From Macrostomum lignano (Eukaryota), in the NCBI GenBank assembly GCA_002269645.1, contig NIVC01003870.1:1-42138 (forward strand): 42,138 nt of DNA. The letters are read 5' to 3'. The notes beneath the pieces are model-generated. The model had not been told where the DNA came from. It saw nothing but the letters and a program-made list of their open reading frames with translations, and did no database searches. Position 1 is the stretch's first letter. The number at the start of each line of letters is the position of its first letter. Below are positions 6,068-6,513 of the stretch, piece after piece. The position numbers and the translations under genes are program-made.

Positions 6068-6212
6068 AGAGGTACGGGGAGTCTTTTCACGTCACTAATT
6101 TTCTCTCCGATTAGTTGAAAAAGTGTTTACTGAAATAACTTCAACTGATCGTTCTGTAAATTATGGTTTTACCAATATTTAACCTTGAGAATTTAATACC
6201 CAAATATTTTAG

Positions 6213-6513
6213 GTCACATCGGCGCAAAACGATGATTATGACTCCGGCGGAGCAGTTAGCGGCAGAGGCGGCGGTGGTGGCAGTGGAATCGGGTCTCCGT
6301 CGATTCCACTGTCCCTGACCATCGCCATCGTCTGCTGCTGCTGTTGTTGCTTCGGCGGAGTGGCCGTGGCAGCGGCAGGTGGAGGCGGGGGCGCCAGCAG
6401 CGGTCTCGGAGTATCGGGCAGCTTTCTAGACTGCTACAGACAAACTGCCAGCAGCATGTCGCTGGCCAAGGCTGCCGCCGTTTTGATCAAACTTCCTACA
6501 AGTTTGAAACTTG
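6213..6513 (+). CDS. First coding exon of large gene (Gly-rich, signal/anchor segment)
   Basis: Acceptor tattttag; open frame [13 protein letters not shown]...[26 protein letters not shown]...; donor g|gtcag in phase 1. No in-frame ATG before the hydrophobic segment. Confidence 0.6.

Follow-up and report, generated by a model that had tools for sequence, protein, structure and literature searches.

Every flatworm spliced leader (SL) ends in AUG (PMC12582326), and for Macrostomum the SL-final ATG has been described as a likely translation start codon (PMC10468722). The closest described system is that of the SL-AUG open reading frames ("slORFs") of Schistosoma mansoni, where 28% of trans-spliced transcripts have the SL AUG in frame and over 40 cDNAs depend on it, according to the account in PMC9851317 of the original study (Cheng 2006, J Biol Chem 281:733). 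In Macrostomum lignano the leader is 35 nt long (CGGTCTCTTACTGCGAAGACTCAATTTATTGCATG) and ends in ATG (PMC8629364), a longer form being given in PMC5173321, and its part ...CTCAATTTATTGCATG would mark SL-containing reads. The share of trans-spliced genes in this species has been put at 30% (PMC8629364) to 38.8% (PMC5730564), conserved genes are over-represented among them, and of 21754 trans-acceptor sites, 9551 (44%) carry the enriched motif [T/C]TNCAG (PMC8629364). Operons are recognized in M. lignano by a repeat-adjusted intergenic distance of less than 1 kb (PMC5730564; PMC8629364), and SL trans-splicing is stated to require an acceptor without an upstream cis donor (Conrad 1993, as cited in PMC8629364).

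Here we focus on an exon that starts at position 6213 of a 42,138-nt stretch of M. lignano DNA (referred to as the window here), and for which a first-pass annotation had proposed that the missing start codon is supplied by the SL. The flatworm property on which that proposal relied holds for the source species, whose SL ends in ...TTGCATG. As far as the summary describes them, the S. mansoni slORFs share with the 6213 locus an AUG-ended SL, a phase-0 acceptor, and an AUG-less reading frame ahead of an essential N-terminal feature, and the predicted product in both is Met followed by exon-encoded sequence. The slORFs rest on cDNAs and translation assays, whereas trans-splicing and use of the SL AUG at the 6213 locus are putative and have cis-exon and frameshift alternatives. 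Compared with the M. lignano operons (Wudarski 2017, PMC5730564; Ustyantsev & Berezikov 2021, PMC8629364), the locus is alike in species, in its same-strand upstream candidate gene at a repeat-adjusted distance of ~1.1 kb, and in its spacer without a strong cis donor, but it departs from the trans-splicing norm of the species in that its acceptor, TTTTAG, is unlike the enriched [T/C]TNCAG motif, the distance to the upstream candidate is at the 1-kb edge, and the gene appears not to be conserved.

The exon at 6213 and its absent start codon

The source organism was established by an exhaustive HMMER search with exons 1 to 3 as the query, in which UniProt entry A0A1I8I6U3 (P0002), a "TNFR-Cys domain-containing protein" of M. 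lignano, came up; it matches exons of the window, from 3640 to 15542, at 100% identity. A word-indexed protein search, run with exons 1 to 3 and with a low-complexity-stripped version plus the exon at 3640, came back blank and missed even this 100%-identical entry, so that its blanks are tool artefacts and not evidence. Exact-sequence look-up of eight candidate products gave no match. The whole window is eukaryotic and rich in tandem repeats. The ~1800-aa protein of the first-pass annotation is hypothetical: public gene models span 3640 to 15542 (A0A1I8I6U3), and the region from 32.2 to 35.2 kb matches another M. lignano fragment (P0001), with a complete-looking minus-strand ORF (17364-18419) between the two; a 462-aa ORF at 31219-32604 has P0001 as its sole match in the word-indexed search (49% identity). 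Locus and transcript look-ups for A0A1I8I6U3, P0001, and three ORFs of the window yielded nothing. Neither an SL sequence nor an SL RNA gene was found in the window, and Rfam and tRNA scans of it were also blank.

Five hand-chained exons, beginning with the one at 6213, translate without a stop and are all phase 1-1 from exon 2 on (Table 1). Exons 3 to 5 contain Pfam domains past the curated cut-offs, namely EGF_CA (38.8 bits; cut-off, 27) and TNFR_c6 (33.5 bits; cut-off, 29.4), with EGF_3 also above threshold, and their PDB matches are EGF modules of NELL2, ADGRE5, and Notch (best, 4.9e-27). This likeness to NELL2, ADGRE5/CD97, the Notch EGF repeats, and the TNFR Cys-rich domains is one of modules and not of orthology. 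The phase 1-1 exons are typical of shuffled extracellular modules. The N-terminal 130 residues and a C-terminal multi-TM (transmembrane) part are without characterised relatives; outside the species, the N-terminal part of the protein has no detectable relatives except generic EGF modules. Exon 2 is similar to a single repeat of P0003, an FG-GAP-like protein (E = 1.6e-5). Under the best explanation, the 6213 exon would open the coding part of a gene whose product is an extracellular EGF/cbEGF/TNFR-Cys protein. Given that exons 3 to 5 encode disulfide-rich extracellular modules, an ER signal is required upstream of them, which makes the absence of an ATG a real question.

The first-pass annotation had described an AT-rich acceptor followed by a phase-0 exon, without an in-frame ATG ahead of its hydrophobic stretch and with two ATGs in an out-of-frame ORF of about 30 codons, and each of these features is present. 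The reading frame from 6213 comprises 120 open codons, ending at 6572, and has its first ATG at codon 82 (6456-6458), i.e., beyond the hydrophobic segment; the out-of-frame ORF has 28 codons. Over the 20 nt that precede the acceptor, the pyrimidine fraction is 0.60 and the T fraction 0.45. The frame arithmetic of that annotation was also right, as ATG joined to GTC ACA TCG... gives MVTSAQ... and stays open across exons 1 to 5. The TAG at 6210-6212 doubles as the in-frame stop that opens the ORF and as the acceptor AG, and "phase 0 at the acceptor" is therefore partly a matter of construction. By chance, the leader AUG would be in frame at about one acceptor in three. From the position-specific composition of 6213-6455, in-frame ATGs are expected at a rate of ~0.6% of codons, and a run of 81 ATG-free codons would occur in ~60% of cases.

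Codon scores, which were set against GC-matched null windows, place the whole 6213 exon above 13 of 13 such windows. The 3-nt periodicity is strong in 6213-6455 (chi2 P = 1.2e-6), where the frame-0 Gly runs employ all four Gly codons. Within the first 27 codons the frame is not fixed by codon-usage and composition tests, though 6213-6455 is supported as coding; over 6232-6315, position-specific composition favours the +1 frame of ATG 6232 by 5.9 bits, a value confounded by the Gly-rich frame 0. The 98 nt between exons 1 and 2 (6514-6611) show intron-like AT richness. Besides the donor listed in Table 1, exon 1 has an alternative donor, CAG/GTGGAG at 6378/6379 (+1.05), which is the one chosen by the public model. 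All donor scores come from a generic metazoan matrix and serve as a relative guide only, supported donors lying between 3.5 and 6.0. The N-terminal context of the hydrophobic segment, which was scored by Kyte-Doolittle values, varies with the start that is used. Two further origins of the N terminus were considered and rejected: an unspliced one in the frame-2 ORF at 6260-6859, which is ATG-free, and acceptors within 6250-6285, which have GC-rich surroundings without a pyrimidine tract.

Table 1. Features at and around the exon at 6213 (positions in the window; slashes within sequences and residues mark splice cuts or, in AAA/GG, the possible cleavage site)
Feature	Positions	Strand	Details
Candidate first exon of an upstream gene, MQVLFLALILTQTLSNA/EP...	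2685-2891	+	ATG 2685; signal-peptide-like; phase-0 donor AAA/GTAAGT, 5.18
GC-rich ATG-less coding exon, RGWQEKSVTHAAVFPLVAVLIAAAVAAAILI/VIFVASCYHSAY then stop	3640-3771	+	acceptor ttgttgcag/, phase 0; in-frame TAA 3589-91; TGA 3769-3771
Candidate cis first exon with ATG, MTELNELTLSAFMAPDSS...PIE	5034-5138	+	phase-0 donor GAG/GTCTGG (-0.73), in frame with 6213
50-bp tandem repeat, 8.3 copies, 98% identical	5659-6071	.	140 nt upstream of the 6213 acceptor
AT-rich tract and acceptor, caaatattttag/GTCA	6190-6212	+	cut 6212/6213 (ttttag/G)
Exon 1	6213-6513	+	frame 0; 100 codons + 1 nt; phase-1 end; weak donor TTG/GTCAGA (-0.58)
+1-frame ORF, 28 codons	6232-6318	+	ATG 6232, second ATG 6238; A at -3; TGA 6316-6318
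Hydrophobic signal- or anchor-like segment, then Gly run	6303-6380	+	Kyte-Doolittle 19-residue peak 2.51; possible AAA/GG cleavage site
Exon 2	6612-6707	+	phase 1-1; donor TTG/GTAAGA, 3.48
Exon 3	7582-7896	+	phase 1-1; Cys-rich/EGF-like; residues from 7690 on 100% identical to A0A1I8I6U3
Exon 4	8219-8341	+	phase 1-1; calcium-binding EGF; EGF_CA 1.1e-9, NELL2 4.9e-27; omitted from the public model
Exon 5	8494-8568	+	phase 1-1; TNFR-type Cys-rich module; TNFR_c6 5.7e-8

Upstream exons and the public gene model

The public model A0A1I8I6U3, which is encoded in the window, shares the 6213 acceptor and its frame with our chain of exons. It differs in beginning without a Met in the exon at 3640 (3640-3732), where a poor donor links it in phase 0 to the VTSAQ... 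that starts at 6213, and in its splice 6378/7690, by which it leaves out exon 2 and half of exon 3; the cbEGF exon is omitted as well, and the model is partial at both ends. It has the look of an ab initio chain in which adjacent genes were fused, as would come from a predictor unable to model trans-splicing. The donor at 3732, ATC/GTGATC, scores -3.27, the 69th percentile of all GTs in the window, versus 3.5 to 6.0 for the supported donors. An alternative donor of the same exon, ACA/GTGCGT at 3760, is in phase 1, scores -0.36, and fits exon 2. When read through, the exon at 3640 encodes a 26-residue TM helix and SCYHSAY before its TGA. Its codon score is significant (P = 0.016), as is that of the 33 nt read through after 3732 (P = 0.028), and its frame preference exceeds 20 bits. 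Joining 3732 to 6213 without an extra signal peptide would put two hydrophobic segments ahead of the EGF/TNFR modules and thus leave these modules cytosolic. The first-pass annotation had named a cis-spliced upstream exon with an ATG as evidence that would speak against an SL start; the public model does join an upstream exon to 6213, but that exon is itself ATG-less and its donor is the poor one at 3732. The join does not settle the question of the start, and a terminal exon, belonging to a small gene upstream, seems the better description of the exon at 3640.

Such a gene would start in the exon at 2685-2891, whose donor is one of only two strong plus-strand donors in 1-6212. Together with the exon at 3640 it would encode a 112-aa protein with a signal peptide and a TM segment, predicted to be a type I membrane protein. 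The succession of signal peptide, strong phase-0 donor, phase-0 acceptor, TM segment, and stop is a tidy, self-consistent explanation of the exon at 3640; against it stands the first exon, which is AT-rich (GC3, 0.33) and without codon-usage support. No AATAAA-like hexamer was found within 240 nt past the stop. The tandem repeat at 5659-6071 and an array at 4003-4920 occupy much of the 3772-6212 spacer, and the distance from the stop (3771) to 6213, 2445 nt minus repeats of 918 and 413 nt, comes to ~1.1 kb, which borders on the 1-kb limit used for operons. A splice from 2891 to 6213 that omits the exon at 3640 was rejected: it is in frame, yet a signal peptide followed by one TM segment would make the EGF/TNFR modules cytosolic.

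The stretches 3640-3760 and 6213-6513 have in common a phase-0 acceptor of an ATG-less ORF, a hydrophobic segment, a phase-1 end, and a fit to exon 2. We regard it as very improbable that a single EGF/TNFR receptor-like gene uses them as alternative first exons dependent on the SL AUG, with the choice of trans-splice site swapping the signal sequence, or that the read-through form of the exon at 3640 is a 44-residue SL-AUG-dependent single-pass microprotein.

Weighing the candidate starts

Trans-splicing of the SL at 6212/6213, with the SL AUG as the start codon, is by a narrow margin the best single explanation of the 6213 exon, and we assign it a probability of about one in three. The pre-mRNA would come either from a promoter inside the repeat-filled spacer at 3.8-6.2 kb or from the downstream part of a transcript common with the small upstream gene (2685-2891 plus 3640-3768). 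The 35-nt SL would be joined to it at 6212/6213 to give a mature mRNA reading ...UUGCAUG/GUC ACA UCG, in which the SL AUG would precede every other AUG and lie in frame, and the hydrophobic segment, at residues ~32-57, would act as a long signal peptide or a signal anchor. The SL AUG has T at -3; ribosomes bypassing it would initiate at AUG 6232 and produce a 28-residue out-of-frame peptide. The ORF at 6232-6318 is a candidate uORF or overlapping ORF, or may hold the true start should a base be missing from the assembly; the regulatory role proposed for it earlier is pure speculation.

What speaks for an SL start is that the 6213 exon provides the only in-frame, splice-compatible hydrophobic segment directly upstream of the EGF/TNFR modules, and that this segment lies ahead of any ATG. 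With the generic donor matrix, no strong plus-strand donor was found in 2892-6212, which, given the acceptor requirement stated for SL trans-splicing, favours trans-splicing at 6213. It is favoured too by the signal sequence that the modules need, the poor join in the public model, the plausible same-strand upstream gene ~1.1 kb away after repeat subtraction, and the high trans-splicing rate of the species. Against it, the acceptor is off-motif, both donors of the exon score weakly (-0.58 and +1.05), the candidate upstream gene has neither an AATAAA-like hexamer within 240 nt of its stop nor codon-usage support for its first exon, and the resulting n-region, with 31 residues and a net acidic charge, is atypical for a signal peptide. 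Composition over the early codons slightly prefers the frame of ATG 6232, and the phase-0 acceptor is, as noted above, partly built in. The gene also seems not to be conserved, unlike most M. lignano trans-spliced genes, and the sole public model of the locus has what would be a cis exon joined at the same acceptor.

The most probable of the alternatives, though doubtful in itself, is a cis-spliced upstream exon with an ordinary ATG, either (a) through 2685-2891, 3640-3732, and 6213 or (b) through 5034-5138 and 6213. The chain in version (a), with its phase-0 donor of 5.18 at 2891, is in frame throughout and contains the very 3732/6213 junction that is present in A0A1I8I6U3; a signal peptide followed by TM1 and TM2 would make the EGF/TNFR part extracellular, and an internal exon would be expected to show no polyadenylation hexamer after the stop that follows 3768, as is the case. 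However, the donor at 3732 is no better than about one-third of random GTs, the sequence at 3733-3765 is still coding-like before it runs into the stop, and the public model that supplies the junction is poor elsewhere, with the cbEGF exon and half of exon 3 missing and both ends partial. The exon of version (b) is the best of 17 ATG-to-phase-0-GT candidates, with G at -3, a clear frame preference, and a codon score that ranks within the top 4% of the GC-matched nulls; its donor (GAG/GTCTGG), however, is weak at -0.73, and its codon P value of ~0.04 is uncorrected for the number of ORFs examined. Ranking behind a cis-spliced start, and likewise unlikely, is the reading that the 6213 exon does not encode the translated N terminus at all, because 3640-3760 is spliced to 6612 and bypasses 6213-6513, or because the 5' part of this exon is untranslated (5' UTR) and ATG 6456 serves as the start codon. 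The bypass is in frame and, with a Met supplied at 3640, yields the best-formed N terminus of all (MRGWQEKSVTH followed by a 26-residue hydrophobic core; Kyte-Doolittle 19-residue value, 3.26; flank charges, +1/-4); the donor at 3760 (-0.36) equals that at 6513 (-0.58) in quality, and the acceptor at 3640, TTGCAG, matches the trans-splice motif and is in phase 0 of an ATG-less ORF. It would, though, itself require an SL AUG at 3640 or an upstream exon, and it implies an intron of 2.85 kb whose donor has A at -1. For a start at 6456, this ATG is the first in frame and has A at -3, and UTRs too can hold GC-rich triplet-repeat sequence, but the result would be an EGF/TNFR protein without a credible signal (no 19-residue window reaches 1.6, the maximum being 1.16). 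Both forms have to contend with the strong 3-nt periodicity of 6213-6455 and its frame-0 Gly runs with all four Gly codons, which point to coding sequence, and with the AT-rich, intron-like character of 6514-6611.

If one base were missing from the assembly in the stretch from about 6240 to 6316, with GGG 6290-6292 and CCC 6313-6315 as possible places, ATG 6232 would be the true start, an alternative that the first-pass annotation had also named and that we consider very improbable. This ATG has A at -3 and a good Kozak context, and its frame has a typical GC3, gains 5.9 bits over 6232-6315, and holds a marginal edge in codon score; one C added at 6313-6315 would put RR right before the hydrophobic core, as in a classical n-region, and the M. 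lignano assemblies are PacBio-based. The homopolymers there are just 3 nt long, though, an indel in a stretch of 80 nt has a prior probability of ~1%, and the composition edge of the ATG 6232 frame is largely a by-product of the frame-0 GGN codons. The UniProt model is also in the same frame as the window, although it may derive from the same assembly. The weight that remains after these four scored readings, the SL start included, goes to something else.

Meaning for gene models and for M. lignano

Predictors that are unable to model trans-splicing fuse neighbouring genes or yield 5'-partial proteins, and A0A1I8I6U3, with its Met-less start, the probable foreign exon joined to it, and the omitted cbEGF exon, serves as an example. 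Initiation at the SL AUG at 6213, even if true, is a further case of a flatworm mechanism described in 2006 and opens no new question. If confirmed, it would provide a concrete Macrostomum protein whose initiator Met, and hence its ER targeting, is encoded solely in the SL, and what Cheng et al. (2006) found in Schistosoma would then hold for a free-living, transgenesis-capable flatworm as well.

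Public models of the locus

The public M. lignano model A0A1I8I6U3 (UniProt/WormBase type), which is identical to exons of the window, is spliced from 6378, within the ATG-less exon 1 of the EGF/TNFR-type gene, to 7690 in the middle of exon 3, and leaves out the well-formed calcium-binding EGF exon at 8219-8341 (EGF_CA, 1.1e-9). This UniProt entry looks misannotated. An exhaustive representative search recovered it immediately, whereas the word-indexed protein search never returned it, despite 71 to 86 identical residues in the queries; being blind to this model, the word-indexed search gives negatives that are not trustworthy for this locus.

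A second M. lignano UniProt fragment, P0001, is matched by the 3' multi-pass membrane region and carries the name “ABC transporter domain-containing protein.” The name looks unfounded, since a Pfam search of P0001 detected neither an ABC domain nor any other. For exon 2, the encoded peptide (6612-6707) matches a repeat unit of the 453-amino-acid FG-GAP-like repeat protein P0003, QLEVFVVDN.G..NVLWKAQNGTWN.PV, with an E value of 1.6e-5, and the exon 2 region holds only one such unit.

Upstream candidate gene and tandem repeats

Upstream of the splice acceptor at 6213, the product of a candidate two-exon gene is predicted to comprise a signal peptide and a transmembrane helix followed by a tail of 7 residues. 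Its exons are joined by a strong GTAAGT donor and a TTGCAG acceptor, both in phase 0. The GC3 values of the two exons are very unlike (0.33 for 2685-2891 versus about 0.8 for 3640-3771), and a poly(A) hexamer was not found after the stop codon.

Tandem repeats are extremely dense in the window (46 TRF rows), and many of them yield long spurious ORFs in several frames. A 50-bp unit (8.3 copies, 98% identity) lies 140 nucleotides upstream of the 6213 acceptor, intron 2 is filled by 56 copies of a 15-bp unit, and the window further contains long arrays of (CTGT)n/(GTCT)n.

Features of the window
Feature	Positions	Strand	Remarks
Candidate two-exon gene	2685-2891 + 3640-3771	+	112-aa type I membrane protein
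Single-exon ORF, 351 aa	17364-18419	-	Complete-looking; signal-peptide-like N terminus
3' exons, multi-pass membrane region	31219-35167	+	35-49% identity to P0001
ORF, 249 aa	40209-40955	-	Weak Tc1/mariner-type transposase signatures
ORF, 334 aa	41109-42110	-	Contains ...GGASAAFRGGLSVADIRCLGDWRSDSVFRYF...
Tandem repeat regions (TRF)	4003-4920, 5659-6071, 6726-7573, 16329-16788, 19201-20285, 24867-25834, 26286-27934, 28641-29686, 36950-37813

Opposite-strand ORFs

The 249-amino-acid ORF is probably a decayed transposon; its signatures (Transposase_1, 5.5e-4; HTH_Tnp_Tc3_2, 0.01) all fall below the Pfam cutoffs. The 334-amino-acid ORF had no Pfam match, and its GGASAAFRGGLSVADIRCLGDWRSDSVFRYF stretch bears a possible resemblance to the C-terminal motif of tyrosine recombinases from Crypton/DIRS-type elements. 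The 351-amino-acid ORF, with no match in Pfam or PDB, sits amid plus-strand exons and may represent a nested or intervening gene; it is thus relevant to the question of whether these plus-strand exons make up one gene of ∼1800 amino acids.
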